Positions 3,804-51,346 of a stretch of DNA of 64,000 nucleotides are shown here, one piece after another. Positions within the stretch are counted from its first letter, which is position 1; each line of letters opens with the position of its first letter. Below the pieces are notes generated by a model that saw only the letters and a program-made list of their open reading frames with translations, ran no database searches and was not told where the DNA came from. The stretch comes from Macrostomum lignano. Taxonomy: Eukaryota. Location of the stretch: assembly GCA_002269645.1 (NCBI GenBank), contig NIVC01000553.1, forward strand, positions 94,554 through 158,553, in the 5' to 3' direction. Position numbers and translations under genes: made by a program.

Positions 3804-4644
3804 GAAGAGTTGCCCAGTCGTCAAACGCAGGCACCCCTTCCCTGATTTTAAGCCTTCTGAGCTGCCACTACGCCATTTTAATCCGAGCGGTCTCACCTAC
3901 TCTCTGCAGCCCTGTCTTTAGCGAGAATGAAATCTCGCTAAATACCGCCTCTTACGAAAAAACTTGGTAGCTATGCCAACTTTGGCGAAGTGAACTGCAA
4001 GTGCTCAGATTGACCTGCTGCTTTGGCGGCGGCAAACATGAAAGACCTGGAGTATATATACCGTATGTATAAGAAAAGCCAGGTCAAATAGTGCTCCATT
4101 CTTCCGCGGATCTTGAAATCCTCTACACACTGAATTATATCCACCTGATCCTGATCACCCTTTCCCTTGTGAGCAGTGCTCAAGTTGTAGAAGCTTGGGT
4201 TAAGCGTTAAGGCAATAAATTTTCGATTTCTTCCCTGAAGCATCCTTTGTGTGGATGGTGCACATGCGGGTGAAAGGCACACGCATCCTTATAATTATCA
4301 ACAACACTGTGCGGGTACGAACGGTGTTCTCACTCCTCCCCCCTCTCTTTCTAACTTTCAGATTAGCCAACCCCTTTAGCTGATGGTAGATTAGCGCTGG
4401 CCTAGTTCCATAATTTAATTACACGTGTGTGTTCTCAAGTTTTAATGGTGCCTAAAAATTATGACCCTGTTCAAATAATACCCCTGCTAATCAGTGTTGC
4501 GCTGTTGTAAAATTATTGCCACGTAAGTTACACGTAGGTTGAGAGGCCATGTGCCTTGTAAAGACAGATCAAGGGAGCGATTTTGACATGCAAATTGATG
4601 AATACTTGGTACGTTAAAATAAATATATAGGCAACAAAGAAATA

Positions 4645-39807: not shown

Positions 39808-40669
39808 ACACGAGCCCAATGCCAACCGATTCCAGAGTGTGCAAGTTGGAAGGCCGCTATGGCAGACGCAGATGTTGCAGCAGCAGCAGCACTACACCAG
39901 CTGCGGGCTGTCTGCTGCGTTACGCACCGTCGGGACAGACGTTGAGTACGACCTCTGCCAGCCCGAGTGGCCAGACTTCGCTGTCAATCAATGTGGCAAC
40001 GCCATCATTGCCGCCAACTCGTCAACTCTCTCGTTGCCGCCTCCATCCTGCCTGTCAGGCAGCGGAGCAGCTGCGGCTCGAAGTCCACCGCCGGAGCCGC
40101 CGCCGGACGCGCTGATTTACCGGCCGTTGCGCTGCCTGCCGAGCGGCGGCGGTGACGCGGGCAGGGGCTTGCAGACTCTGCCGCACCCGTCGTCAATGCG
40201 ACAGCGACAGGCGGCAACCATGGCAGCGAGAGGCCTGCAGCCGAACGCGAGTAACTCGACAGACATCGACTCGGAGATTTGGATCCGTCGAAGTGGCGGC
40301 GGGGCAGCTGTCGATATGGACGACGGTTCAAGCGAAGGAGCTGCTGGAGGGCAGCAGCAGCAGCATCTCTGCTTCTGTTCACCATCCCTGTCGAGCCATC
40401 GCAATCCACACAGACACGCCAGCAGTGACTTGGACGGCACAGACGCTCTAAGCGGCATCGAACCCGCATCCACCGTAGCTGCGGTGGGAATGAACAGCTA
40501 CTGCGACTTCCGGCAGGCAACACCTGCGGCAGCAGCAGCGGGCAAGACGCAGCGGACCAAGCAGAACCAGCCAATGCAGCTGGTTGCTACCCAGCAGCAG
40601 CACAGACTGCAGTACTACTGCCACTGCCCGGAAGGAAATGCCGATGAAGAATCGACAAGCTTATTTTGA
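39808..40669 (+). CDS. Neuregulin-like gene, terminal exon (low-complexity cytoplasmic tail)
   Basis: Acceptor tacacag|A (phase 2); GC-rich ORF to stop at 40667-40669; Q/A/P-rich. Confidence 0.75.
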
Positions 40670-45332: not shown

Positions 45333-46075
45333 CTGAAGCGTAATACAAAGAAATGTAAAGTTCTAATTAGGTGACGAAGCTTTTTATATTTAAATTAAGC
45401 TATAGTTACTCCCACTGTTTACCCGACCCGATGAAAACGGTACCTAAGGCCAAGAAGCGTCCCAGTCATTTGCGTCGAGCATCTTAGCATTTTATTTTCT
45501 GCGACTCTGGCGCACTCATTACAACTCTATTTAGTCTACTTGAGTTAGTAGAAAGTTAAGCTCTAACACAGCCATTCTTGGACGACTTTTTGCGACTCTA
45601 AAAATCCCGTGATGCGCTCGTTACTCAAGAGTCGCCTAATTCGTCGCATTGAAATCGTGAATCATTAAAAAGTCACAAGAGTGGCCCCAGAATCGCTAGA
45701 GTCACCAGTGAGTTGCTTGCAATGACTCTTAAGCAATTCTTGTCACGGTATCGTTTTCAACGGGCTAAAACCATGCCATGTAGTTTAAATCTTTAACTTT
45801 AAAGGACATCAAAAGCAATCCAGCCCGATCAAGGTTTACGTCCCGGATCTCAGCTCTCTTATTATTTTTCTTTTCTCCTCTCCTATCTCCCCTCTTCTCT
45901 CGCCTCGCCCCACTTCTCTCTCCTCTCATCTCCCCCTTTTCTCTTCACTCCCCTCTTGTCTCTCCTCTCCTCTCTTCTCTCTACTCTCCTCTCTTCTCTC
46001 TCCTCTCCCCTCTCCTCTCTCCTCTCATCTCCCCATTTTCTCTTCTCTCCCCTGTTGTTGTTGTTGTTGTTGTTA

Positions 46076-46900
46076 CTCCCGGCCGGTTGGATCCGGGGGG
46101 GCGTGTCTGCGCCCCTACCGTGCGGAGGAAATCGAGCGCGCGGAGGCCGTCCGTCGAGAGGACGGCCAGGGACGGGTTTGGCCCTAGGGTGCGGGCCCGA
46201 AGGTCGTCAAGGGCCCGGCAGTGCAGGAGGACGTGGGCCACGTCTTCGTCGGCGGCCCCGCAGCGGGGGCAGGTGGCGGCGGTGTCCAGGCCGATCCGGT
46301 GCCGATACCAGCGTAGGAGCGGTGAGTGCCCGTGCGCAGCTGGGCGAGGGTCACCGCGTCGGCCCGGTTAAGGCGTGGCCGCGGGGCGGCGATGGCGGTT
46401 GCCAGACGGTGGGTGGCGCAGTGCGGGTCGGCCGCGTTGGCTTCGCGGGTGCGCTCGGCGAGGACCCGGCGGAGGGCGGCCCGCGCTGACCCGAAGTCGA
46501 TCGGCGTCTCCTTCTGGGGGAGGCCGGCCGCGGTCTTGGCGGTGACGTCCGCAGCATCGTTCCGCCGGAGGTCGCAGTGGCTGGGGACCCATTGCAGCCA
46601 GATTGGGAAGCGGGCGGCGACGTGGGTCAGCAGCGTCCAGATCTCCCGGCACGCTGGCGAGGAGGACTTGGACGGTCCCTTCTCGAGGGCTCGGAGCAGG
46701 GACTGCGAGTCCGTCAGGCAGCGGAGGCCGCTCAGGGAGGCAAGGTCCGGCCTGGAGGCGACGTGCTGAAGCCCCAGCCGGAGAGCCGACTCCTCGGCAC
46801 GGAAGGAGGAAGAGTAACGGCCCGCAGCCTGCGACAGGTGGACTGGCGGCGCGGTCTTGCTGAAGATGACCGCCCCCGCTCCGCCGTTGAGGGTGCCCCG
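46076..46900 (-). pseudogene. Frameshifted C-terminus of the retrotransposon ORF: RNase H and CCHC zinc finger
   Basis: After a shift at the G4 run (46896-46899): NGGAG, SSFRAE, TDSQS, WVPSHC, RNDAAD (RNase H). After a second shift (about 46330): LRTGH..., CPRCGAADEDVAHVLLHC (CX2CX8HX4C). Confidence 0.85.
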
Positions 46901-49900: not shown

Positions 49901-50460
49901 CCTGCCGCGTTGAGCTGGACGATGCGGAAAGCCGCCCCGCTGTTGTTCGGCGCCCCCGCCCGCGCTGGTTGCGCCATCAGGGGGGGCGGGGGTGCCGGTG
50001 CGGGGTTCGGGGGAGGTGGAGTCGTAGCCGTTGGCGTCTGGTGGGTGCCAGTGGGGCCTGCAGCCGCGGAGGGGGCCGGAGTCGCAGCGGGCTGCGGCGC
50101 TGAAGCGGCAGGCTGGTGGGCGCAGGTGGGACAGTGCCACGGTGCCTTGTCCCGGTGGAGCCGGTTGATAGCCGCAATAGTGAGGCGGGAACAGCGGCGG
50201 TGCCACCACAGGCCGCAGTCGGAGCAGCAGGTGGAGTAGCCCCTGGCTACCTCCTCGGCACAGCCTCCGCACGGGAAGGCCGGCCCAGGGTTGGACTCGA
50301 CGTCTCCAGCTCTGAGAAGCAGCTGAGCCAGGTGAGCTGGGAGGCCTGGCTCAGCGTGGAAAAACCCGGGGCGCTCGAAGACCCTCGCACGGGTCCGGGG
50401 TGGTGGCTGCACTTGGCCGGGCGAACCCGGACGGTCCCGCCGCGTGAAGGCGGCAGCCAT
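46732..50460 (-). CDS. Retrotransposon polyprotein: 2A peptide, PHD finger, AP endonuclease, reverse transcriptase, start of RNase H
   Basis: PHD CxxC...CxxC..WWHRRC...WHCPTC (50271-50122); APE QLNAAG, CIQET, VINIY, GDFNAH, SDHLP (about 49930-49240); RT APGPDG, FRPISLL, QAGFR, DFSRAYD, GLPQGSVLAP, YADD, LGV; RNase H begins at WTDGS. Confidence 0.95.
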   Translation of the reverse strand: MAAAFTRRDRPGSPGQVQPPPRTRARVFERPGFFHAEPGLPAHLAQLLLRAGDVESNPGPAFPCGGCAEEVARGYSTCCSDCGLWWHRRCSRLTIAAINRLHRDKAPWHCPTCAHQPAASAPQPAATPAPSAAAGPTGTHQTPTATTPPPPNPAPAPPPPLMAQPARAGAPNNSGAAFRIVQLNAAGLRSRKLELLHFLEKQGADVACIQETNLSGNTAAPRLKGWQIAGRKDRNIGRDGEAARTHHEGVCFLVKEGIQFADLPLGELVTHATSAEASGLRIHDPRLPRPLDVINIYLPPVRAADGRTDAFEPDWIPVSRDSLVLGDFNAHHGMWDASADDDELGRALEDWATTYDLVALNDGSPTRISPRGLPSSPDVSFAHASWQDRIEWRTGEHIGSDHLPIIIDIAASGPARSSSKRLTRYAYHKADWDLFQRTLDQALASWPERPPRTVPVAANRFASAVTSAAKAAIPRGCRRAPIAWWCPEAEAACTARRAALEALRASPDDPALSAAYQAAAAAAAHAICRAKESLWRDFITDPGHDLCSADLWRIIRALDGRSQGTPSSAAIQGSTGAPAVSDKQKAALFCLCREYAAVSRLPKNKAEDRPVIQEARHTLRAPCSCQGLRSGPCSDFQPDALRRALVRLPDRSAPGPDGVANIMLKHLSDLGLRCLLDLLNLSWRTGEVPAPWRLAEIRPIPKSDKPAGLTSSFRPISLLSCLGKLAEKMVNERLSYILEANDALHPSQAGFRQGRSTEEHIAAAAQYIFDGFQAKKPAARTALLLADFSRAYDRVWRAALIVKLGRKGIPTCLIRWLKGFLSDRRAFVRWVSAACKPTVFSEGLPQGSVLAPILWVIYMDDLLDGAPTNCLTLAYADDSTFGAQGTTPRECERALQPAADWLVRWSQTWKVDLSRTKSVVAFFSLDPREVNGKVQPRILLGDSPAPFELHPRLLGVHLDSQLTFRHHAELRRRALQQRTGVLRCLAGRDWGQDGQRLAQLYRTYAEAAALHGASTWLTFASDSCRDEVEIAHRSAARVITGCCRSTAIGALMAEADLVPLATRAEAAGAALFERALRHRQPTPLRAAAGKTSTPRLRAHGEPGAFRRNWRDSAQHLSAAAGLATLPREQENLPPPPWSDTSRITIRCDLLTATSREEAPHVRKLAALETLASLPPADLELWTDGSASGAPSTAERGRSSSARPRRQSTCRRLRAVTLPPSVPRSRLSGWGFSTSPPGRTLPP
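50281..50340 (-). other. 2A (StopGo) ribosome-skipping peptide
   Basis: HLAQLLLRAGDVESNPG|P fits the D(V/I)ExNPG|P consensus with a Leu-rich upstream helix; skip site between 50284 and 50283. Confidence 0.85.
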
Positions 50461-50495
50461 GGGAAGCGCGCGAGCGCGCTCCGGGAGGCGGAACC
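50404..50495 (-). ncRNA. Candidate HDV-like self-cleaving ribozyme at the element 5' end
   Basis: Manual fold: P1 GGUUCCG/CGGGACC, P2 UGGCUG/CAGCCA, P3 CCG/CGG with L3 CCUUCACG, P4 CCGGG-UUCG-CCCGG, J4/2 CCAAGUG, hairpin in J1/2. Confidence 0.65.
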
Positions 50496-50919
50496 TCCCG
50501 ACCTCTCCCCTCTTGTCTCTCCTCTCCTCTCTCTACTCTCTACTCTCTCCTCTTCCCTGTTCTCTCTCCTCTCCCCTCTTCTCTCCACTCTCCCCCCTCT
50601 CTACTCTCCCCTCTTCTCTTTCCTCTCCTCTCTGGCCAGCAGTTTTGCGCTAGTTTCAATATCTCGCCCTTAGGTTAAAAAGTTCGCCGACCTGTGCTCT
50701 AACAATTTAACCTTCGCTAAAATATAAAAATAGTAATAAAGAAATTAACTTTTTAAGATGAAAGAAAAAGCTAAGCTAGAAAATTTAACCAAACGCGGCA
50801 CTTTGGTCTGGATTTATAGGACAATTTATTAATCATAATGATTAAAAGTACATGTGATACATTGATTGATTGATAAGTTTCTGTCTGATAAGCAGCATAG
50901 CAGATTGAACCGATAGAGT

Positions 50920-51346
50920 TCAGAATTCTTCACTTCCGCTATCCTCTTCAGCGGCAGCTGATTTCGCACCGCTTCTGGTGCGACGAACTGTTGGCTTAGT
51001 TTTCTTTGATGTTGCCGCCTTTTTTGTTGTTGGCACTTTCCGTTTGATGTTGCCGCCGCGTTTGATGTCGCCGCCGCCTTCGCTATTAGCAGCATCGCCG
51101 TCTCCAACTTCGTCTGACTCAGACCTGTCAACTGGATCCTTGTCAACCAACTGGCGAATGCGCTCTTTTTTAGAGTTGAGCACTCGGGAGAATGCAGTCA
51201 GGAGATTGTCGCGTATGGCGGCCTTCTCAGCGGCAGTTCCAGTGTACTTGGCCAGCAACTGTTCGTTGCGCTGGTGCAGATCAGCCAGCTCAGCTGATTG
51301 GCTGGCCAAAGCGGCCTGAGCTGCCGCCAGGTGGGACTCCAATGAC
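50920..51346 (-). CDS. XRCC4: XRCC4 exon 2 (coiled-coil stalk and disordered tail)
   Basis: KAAIRDNLLTAFSRVLNSKKERIRQL resembles XRCC4 [26 protein letters not shown]; acceptor ctgacag|G (phase 2). Confidence 0.85.

Follow-up and report, generated by a model that had tools for sequence, protein, structure and literature searches.

We analysed a 64,000-nt stretch of the Macrostomum lignano genome (contig NIVC01000553.1, positions 94,554 to 158,553; hereafter the window), which carries on its minus strand a retrotransposon without long terminal repeats (non-LTR type). The element is a 4.45-kb long interspersed nuclear element (LINE) with one open reading frame (ORF) and a GC content of 70%, set in satellite-rich surroundings of ~43% GC, and it is headed by a 92-nt segment that folds in the manner of the hepatitis delta virus (HDV) ribozyme (Table 1). 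We put at about 80% the probability that this segment, positions 50495 to 50404, is the 5′-terminal HDV-like self-cleaving ribozyme of the retrotransposon. Since the shape is kept by compensating changes in three distant relatives, the fold is very probably, as far as sequence can tell, a real ribozyme of a known kind, which would trim the element RNA from longer transcripts.

Table 1. Parts of the predicted ribozyme, of the element that carries it and of the adjoining host DNA (window coordinates)
Feature	Position	Strand	Remarks
HDV-like ribozyme (predicted), 92 nt	50404..50495	-	Predicted cut 5′ of G50495; nested double pseudoknot complete
P1 5′ strand GGUUCC	50490..50495	-	Pairs with 50433-50438; extendable to 50488 (8-bp register)
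J1/2, 30 nt, GCCUCCCGGAGCGCGCUCGCGCGCUUCCCA	50460..50489	-	Contains an 8-bp hairpin, 50482-50463 (minimum free energy structure of the 92-nt product)
P2 5′ strand UGGCUGC	50453..50459	-	Pairs with 50404-50410; Begins with the U and G of the start codon
P3 GCC (50451-50449), L3 UUCACGC (50448-50442), P3′ GGC (50441-50439)	50439..50451	-	P3 common to all four sequences
P1 3′ strand GGGACC, then J1/4 GU (50432-50431)	50433..50438	-	Pairs with 50490-50495
P4 hairpin CCGGG-UUCG-CCCGG, CCGGGUUCGCCCGG	50417..50430	-	Other sequence, same place in relatives
J4/2 CCAAGU	50411..50416	-	Candidate catalytic C 50416, alternatively 50415; CAA kept in four of four sequences
P2 3′ strand GCAGCCA	50404..50410	-	Pairs with 50453-50459
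7-nt leader GTCGGGA	50496..50502	-	Between target-site duplication and predicted cut site
Target-site duplication, 5′ copy, 8 bp, GGGGAGAG	50503..50510	-	By joining of the flanks
Main ORF, 1242 aa	46732..50460	-	60-aa leader peptide with 2A, PHD-like Cys/His finger, apurinic/apyrimidinic endonuclease (APE), reverse transcriptase (RT)
2A StopGo motif LAQLLLRAGDVESNPGP, aa 44-60	50281..50331	-	Invariant among relatives
RNase H domain, shifted frame	46328..46891	-	Pfam RNase_H 1.7e-05; tblastn with P0001 and P0002
C-terminal Cys/His region, third frame	46095..46331	-	tblastn with P0001 and P0002
3′ tail (AAC)7	46054..46074	-	Tails of relatives are (CAA)n or (CAG)n
Target-site duplication, 3′ copy, 8 bp, GGGGAGAG	46045..46052	-	By joining of the flanks
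Putative last exon, XRCC4-like host gene	50920..51342	-	Pfam XRCC4_CC E=0.0086, below cut-off

Every part of the nested double pseudoknot is in place. P1 comprises 6 bp (GGUUCC/GGGACC), its 3′ strand directly following P3′, and lengthens to 7–8 bp in alternative registers. P2 comprises 7 bp and crosses P1 as a pseudoknot, leaving C50452 unpaired before P3, as is also seen in one of the relatives (locus L007). A 3-bp P3 closes a 7-nt loop L3 that is identical in a second relative (L002), the P4 hairpin stands between J1/4 and J4/2, and J4/2 opens with the candidate catalytic cytidine in the context C50416-C-A-A, where the relatives read CCAAG, GCAAAAU and CAAAUC. The fold overlaps the first 19 codons of the ORF, whose AUG (50460-50458) lies at the 5′ edge of P2. 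An earlier reading of this DNA (the original prediction) had described the fold with slightly different strand ends, and all of its pairings are found in the minus strand: P1 GGUUCCG/CGGGACC (50495-50489/50439-50433), P2 UGGCUG/CAGCCA (50459-50454/50409-50404), P3 CCG/CGG around CCUUCACG, P4 at 50430-50417 and J4/2 from C50416. The HDV-like fold that it observed is confirmed, with the AUG at the start of P2, and its remark that P1 and P3 might be shifted proved apt: one register, displaced by 1–2 nt (P1 of 6 bp, P3 GCC/GGC, L3 UUCACGC), fits four sequences, the window and its three relatives.

An RNAbob-style HDV descriptor, a kind of search put forward with the original prediction, was written for this analysis and run over both strands of the window; in its strict form it returns 50404-50495 as the best match on either strand. 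Dinucleotide shuffles of the 70%-GC element yield 0.0037–0.0075 descriptor matches per kb, or roughly 5e-4 to 1e-3 for the element's first ~100 nt. A uniform descriptor recovers all four folds; apart from these it matches 6 times over 270 kb of real DNA and once over 811 kb of shuffles. All four stand on the sense strand and no farther than ~250 nt upstream of a 2A, which amounts to roughly 4 kb of searched sequence. Further matches of the uniform descriptor in the window, at 39905-39994 and 40303-40393 (both on the plus strand), fall in a low-complexity ORF region, have neither retroelement context nor the core sequence, and are taken as chance. The minimum free energy (MFE) structure of the 92-nt window product holds P1, the J1/2 hairpin, P3 and P4, and that of the fold at locus L009 holds P2, P3 and P4; the MFE z-scores, at -1.0 to -1.7, are unremarkable, in keeping with GC-rich RNA.

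Covariation in distant relatives

Searches with the full ORF, with the N-terminal 116 aa and with a 3-sequence profile returned nothing above 36% identity in the searched protein collections, where the best matches to the element protein, which are metagenome proteins, reach at most 34% identity (36% in a global MAFFT alignment). Tick, water bug and flatworm are the only sources of named relatives; no trypanosome protein is among the matches, and a protein-profile scan of viral contigs found no relative. As no relative closer than 36% was available, we examined the 5′ regions of distant ones. The covariation that the original prediction proposed to look for in other genomic copies appears at this greater distance, as compensatory changes in the three loci described below; within the 64-kb window there is no further copy of the element.

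Loci L002, L007 and L009 (29–36% protein identity) form the same fold, on the sense strand and upstream of a 2A. L002, the locus of protein P0002, has the 20-nt core CGCCUUCACGCGGYGGNNCC in common with the window, the rest of its 5′ region being unalignable; its fold consists of P1 GGAGCC/GGUUCC, P2 UGCUGGGC/GUCCAGCA, an 8-bp P4 and J4/2 GCAAAAU, and its ATG stands at the 5′ edge of P2 as in the window, a placement that is not kept in L009 or L007. At L009:1177-1258 lies a compact, canonical HDV-like fold with the 5′ start GGUUC (P1 GGUUCU/AGAACC, P2 UGUUGGAC/GUCCAACA, P3 GCC/GGC, L3 UCUUCGUU, J4/2 CCAAG), followed after ~110 nt by a 2A, a spacing like that in the window; no match of this quality occurred in 450 kb of shuffles. 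The fold in L007 was picked out by a covariance model that contained only the P2 and P3 pairs, from a MAFFT alignment of the window, L002 and L009. Around the model's hit (L007:1393-1457, E=0.09), the unmodelled P1 (GGUUCC/GGAACC) and P4 (CCAGA/UCUGG) and a 2-bp P1.1 form as well (L007:1385-1456), and this fold ends 45 nt upstream of the ORF.

Over the four sequences the helix cells are paired throughout (88/88). Two to four pair types occur at P1 positions 3, 4 and 6, at P2 positions 2–7 and at P4 positions 1–5, while P3 GCC, most of L3 and the CAA of J4/2 are constant. When pairs are counted on an unfitted MAFFT alignment, P2 and P3 together are 97% paired and include 4 doubly changed pairs, against 15–50% paired in slid controls. 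A constant core of this sort amid covarying helices has the look of a family of functional HDV-like ribozymes. When the core CGCCTTCACGCGGYGGNNCC was scanned for, at least 119 metagenome loci and 7 viral loci turned up; these were rejected as relatives and regarded as chance matches, with no RT and no 2A among the matches listed, and were reused as a negative control. The fold is completed by none of these 126 unrelated core-bearing loci (metagenome and viral, among the matches listed).

Two further candidates were left out since the fold could not be completed in them: at L004:2542-2661, a weaker descriptor match that overlaps an ATG and, in L008, a CCUUCACG block immediately following a (CAG)n tract. 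The surroundings of the L009 fold (L009:1100-1660) hold, in order, a short APE-like fragment (DFNAHHDSWD), the predicted ribozyme with its own 2A (MAGIEPNPGP) and, ~250 nt further on, the 2A of the P0007 ORF, a layout that suggests nested or chimeric insertions.

The 5′ ends of relatives have other features of their own. In the P0004, P0008 and P0010 group, common 5′ blocks GGGGATCCGGTT and a palindrome CGTCTTCGACG occur (L003:2520-2660, L005:170-200, L137:110-225), with no HDV-like fold and no Rfam match; this group may have a different 5′ structure. Several relatives stand in tandem, head to tail, a (CAA)n tail being followed at once by the 5′ end of the next copy (L003:2440-2500, L005:1-60, L136:1-65 and ~5300). 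The 5′ end of P0005-type copies immediately follows a (CAA)n tail and precedes the 2A by only ~60 nt, and in L136, too, no more than ~60 nt separate the start of the next copy from its 2A. The window (~50363-50370, cccGGGTTTTTcc) and 11/11 relatives inspected (L001–L009, L136 and L137) carry a G(G/T)GTTTTT(T) block ~50–70 nt upstream of the 2A; it encodes GF(F/L) or VF(L) with a U-run of 5 or 6, and in L002 the frame changes at or near the run. In P0001, at L001, RT and RNase H are separated by an inserted OTU domain (PF02338), and the ORF is open far upstream of the 2A.

Element borders, leader hairpin and competing explanations

The main ORF matches Pfam RVT_1 (2e-31) and Exo_endo_phos_2 (7e-16). 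The 2A, predicted from the sequence alone, conforms to the pattern D(V/I)ExNPGP after a hydrophobic tract, 40–80 aa from the N-terminus, a position in agreement with that described in PMC3708506. Two frameshifts, near 46870-46890 and near 46330, make this copy defective, a dead element. The combination that the original prediction had proposed, namely ribozyme, 2A and APE-RT-RNase H in one element, is recovered by Pfam and tblastn for its protein part, with the RNase H frameshifted. The element agrees with the Ingi-type layout, 2A standing at the N-terminus of a single ORF that also encodes APE, RT and RNase H; this layout is common to other RNase H-bearing clades and is therefore not diagnostic of the Ingi clade.

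Joining the flanks of the target-site duplication restores a GA-rich tandem repeat with a period of ~97 nt, and a 28-nt exact match to a paralogous repeat unit fixes the empty site and the junction. By these borders the inserted DNA begins at 50502, 7 nt upstream of the predicted cut site. The placement of the ribozyme at the element's 5′ end, as originally proposed, thus stands in that the fold heads the element, though not in the sense that the inserted DNA starts with it. GA-rich purine repeats occur on both flanks of the window element (50503-50640 and 45860-46052) and of L002 (L002:7-170 and 4405-4425), which suggests a target preference for (GA)n-like micro- or minisatellites. The putative XRCC4-like exon, which shares the strand of the element, precedes it by ~420 nt, with an AATAAA near 50830, and this arrangement makes read-through co-transcription plausible. 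Elsewhere, micro- and minisatellites are unusually abundant in window positions 1-34000, where they include, at ~31.9-33.1 kb, a (TCTA/GATA)n-type array of ~1.2 kb, and several arrays of 20–40-nt units at 1.5-12.8, 18.4-21.2, 24.4-25.5 and 27.9-28.7 kb; these arrays create long spurious ORFs.

Several observations weigh against a ribozyme at the head of the element. P1.1 amounts to 1–2 bp at best in the window (G50432-C50446 alone, or GU paired with A50445/C50444), which upholds a caveat of the original prediction; it has 2 bp in L007 and L009, and none is evident in L002. The cut-site pair is G-C in four of four sequences, not the G·U wobble that is usual in HDV-like ribozymes. The wobble is not universal, since L1Tc-type ribozymes pair C1 with G (PMC4035085). 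The inserted DNA starts ahead of the predicted cut by the length of the leader, and when this leader is included in the folding, a hairpin CGGGAGG/CCUCCCG replaces P1 in the MFE structure; the 10-nt leader of L002 (TCGCTGGAAT, L002:170-179) forms a longer hairpin with its own J1/2, which also excludes P1. A check with Infernal-type models, likewise suggested with the original prediction, came out negative: the Rfam HDV-family models match neither the window nor cut-outs of 103–211 nt, at gathering scores or at E≤10. They do not match the relatives either, so that none of the four folds is detected; as even the canonical L009 fold is missed, the test has little power and the missing match is weak evidence. 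In L001, one of the two closest relatives, no such fold is found even with very lax settings, although CAAGUGUCCAAC and other short blocks are shared with the window, and the P0004, P0005, P0008 and P0010 group is without it as well; either the ribozyme is not universal in the clade or these copies are 5′-incomplete. The comparison comprises four sequences only, with P1 and P4 aligned by hand. Finally, the core overlaps coding sequence (AFTR..QVQ) and short peptide motifs recur, so that conservation of the core on its own is confounded.

The leader can be read in two ways. Its 7 nt, along with G50495 and G50494, can base-pair to CCUCCCG (50488-50482) in J1/2, and the leaders of the window and of L002 both contain TCG near the start. 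It may consist of extra bases added at insertion, as documented for Drosophila R2, which is cut at the element's end (PMC3774820), or it may be an element-encoded off-state helix, by analogy with the upstream helices that attenuate the L1Tc and CPEB3 ribozymes (PMC3185411). Snap-back (hairpin-primed) synthesis is a possible origin that would account for the CGGGA in the window; it leaves the first two leader bases unaccounted for and does not account cleanly for the L002 leader. Judging by the modelled structures, the ribozyme of this copy may be slowed by the upstream hairpin that competes with P1.

Among the other explanations, the one that fares best accepts the ribozyme for the family and takes this copy for a relic, held inactive by the leader hairpin, that cleaves poorly or no longer. 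This is possible, if doubtful. The two frameshifts in the RNase H and C-terminal region speak for it, as do the MFE switch brought about by the 7-nt leader, the weak P1.1 and the lowered activity of L1Tc and CPEB3 ribozymes with comparable upstream helices (PMC3185411). All helices and the conserved core are nevertheless intact in this copy, J1/2 contains a stable hairpin like those known to activate (PMC4908430), and the first 1242 codons, being still open, mark the copy as young.

We judge it distinctly unlikely that the conserved double pseudoknot exists without self-cleavage, as a protein-binding site or a start signal resembling an internal ribosome entry site (IRES). The R2 5′ pseudoknot is bound by the R2 protein and has been proposed to be IRES-like (PMC6765202); the G-C cut-site pair and the weak P1.1, which differ from the best-studied ribozymes, and the retention of the leader in the inserted DNA would fit such a role. 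Set against it is the full HDV topology of four of four sequences, down to the C followed by AA in J4/2 and the P1′ strand abutting P3′. To our knowledge, all tested natural RNAs of HDV topology cleave.

A chance fold in a GC-rich 5′ region is very unlikely: GC-rich sequence forms many helices, the z-scores are modest, a lax descriptor gives 10 matches in the window and the uniform one ~0.02 matches per kb in real DNA, yet the strict rate is only 0.0037–0.0075 per kb and three relatives have the same fold in the same place with compensatory changes. Equally little credit is due to selection on the N-terminal peptide (M..AFTR..QVQ) with incidental pairing, for although the core is part of the ORF in the window, and of an open frame in both L002 and L009, with similar motifs in these frames (AFTR, QVQ/NVQQ/KVQQ), the P1 5′ strand precedes the AUG and is non-coding in the window, the helices alter amino acids yet keep their pairs (RRDRPGSPG vs RWFPVAIDSLMAA), and the L007 fold is wholly upstream of the ORF.

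Known HDV-like ribozymes and possible roles

HDV-like ribozymes are known at the 5′ ends of several LINEs, including R2, L1Tc/ingi, RTE and Baggins (PMC6765202, PMC3774820, PMC3185411), and have been reported to promote translation of the downstream ORF (reviewed in PMC6765202). As in Drosophila-type R2, the predicted ribozyme stands at the extreme 5′ end of its LINE, and it resembles the R2 ribozymes in a P1 of 6–7 bp, a variable P4, a J1/4 of 0–2 nt and a long J1/2 insert (PMC3774820). The R2 ribozyme processes the element RNA from a co-transcript and is a proposed aid to translation (PMC3774820), both of which we propose here too, and the leader is comparable to the extra nucleotides often found at R2 5′ junctions where the RNA is cut at the element's end (PMC3774820). 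R2 differs in its restriction-like endonuclease, its 28S rDNA target and the lack of a 2A, whereas the present element belongs to the APE-type LINEs, has RNase H and 2A and is inserted in a GA-rich repeat, with a G-C cut-site pair and the AUG inside P2.

In composition the element is like L1Tc/ingi, in which a 5′ HDV-like ribozyme accompanies one ORF that has a 2A at its N-terminus and encodes APE-RT-RNase H (PMC3185411, PMC4035085). The L1Tc ribozyme (L1TcRz) has a weak P1.1 of a single pair, comparable to the P1.1 that may form in the window, and its activity is modulated by upstream and downstream sequence (PMC3185411, PMC4035085), which would be a further likeness. Unlike the window sequence, the L1Tc type starts with C1, has its P1 G-C pairs in a different orientation and lies within a 77-nt promoter/ribozyme hallmark in the 5′ untranslated region (PMC4035085). 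The L1Tc 5′ end (Pr77) starts CCCTGGCTCAGCCGG (primer in PMC4748587); identity of the Pr77 type is ruled out by the G at +1 (GGUUCC start) and by the lack of any resemblance to CCCTGGCTCAGCCGG. The L1Tc L3 and J4/2 sequences that the original prediction gave as very similar were not found in the literature searched, and the overall interpretation of the original prediction, with its likening to L1Tc/ingi, is partly supported.

The mammalian CPEB3 ribozyme, unlike the sequence described here, is single-copy and intronic, has a G·U cut-site pair and is not linked to a retrotransposon ORF. Its published structure is said to contain a single G-C P1.1 pair beside a U·U mismatch, which the window would match. 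The hexamer UUCACG of L3 also occurs in the mouse Cpeb3 ribozyme, where it occupies nt ~19-24 (primer GTTCACGTCGCGGCC, PMC10919898). With drz-Agam-2 the predicted ribozyme shares a stable hairpin in a ~30-nt J1/2 between P1 and P2 (PMC4908430). Structured J1/2 helices ('P1.2') activate large HDV-like ribozymes (PMC4908430); for drz-Agam-2 activation by the helix has been shown, whereas here it would hold by analogy, the leader being an alternative pairing partner for part of J1/2. At the protein level, Ingi-1_AC of Aplysia is similar in its single ORF, in a 2A 40–80 residues from the N-terminus and in the PHD finger that is sometimes found between 2A and APE (PMC3708506). 2A sequences in animal LINEs, including this Ingi-clade element, have thus already been published (PMC3708506), in a paper with no mention of ribozymes.

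By analogy with R2 and L1Tc, the element would be transcribed within a longer RNA, for example by read-through from the XRCC4-like gene, and the ribozyme would then cut just 5′ of G50495 and release the element RNA with a 5′-OH. The folded 5′ ribozyme of this uncapped RNA may, again by analogy with R2 and L1Tc, help ribosomes to start at the AUG in P2, and the 2A would split the enzyme from its first 60 residues. That the ribozyme, the AUG in P2, the 2A and the leader hairpin form one functional module is a more speculative and rather unlikely reading. If it were true, the hairpin between leader and J1/2 would keep some transcripts uncut, as full-length templates that retain the leader, and other transcripts would refold and be cut, giving mRNAs without a cap in which ribosomes are offered the AUG by the 5′ pseudoknot. 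Of the 60 codons that precede the 2A cleavage point, at least the first ~19 would be set by RNA structure and not by protein function, and the N-terminal 2A would exist to shed this RNA-dictated peptide from the enzyme. Such a module would explain why 2A and 5′ ribozymes occur together both in L1Tc/ingi and in the present clade.

HDV-like processing of LINE 5′ ends is already established, which makes the advance an incremental one, and the family itself may have been described earlier, for example among the sea-urchin or amphioxus 'drz' ribozymes. As read here, the fold would add an HDV-like ribozyme family that no Rfam model detects, and would tie the ribozyme to a widespread, little-described clade of 2A-bearing RNase H LINEs, some of them in GA-rich microsatellites. 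In the literature searched, a 5′ HDV-like ribozyme and a 2A are discussed together only for trypanosomatid L1Tc (T. cruzi); the pairing of the two would now extend well beyond it. The AUG within P2 and a leader hairpin in competition with P1 would bear on how uncapped LINE RNA is translated and how its cleavage is regulated.

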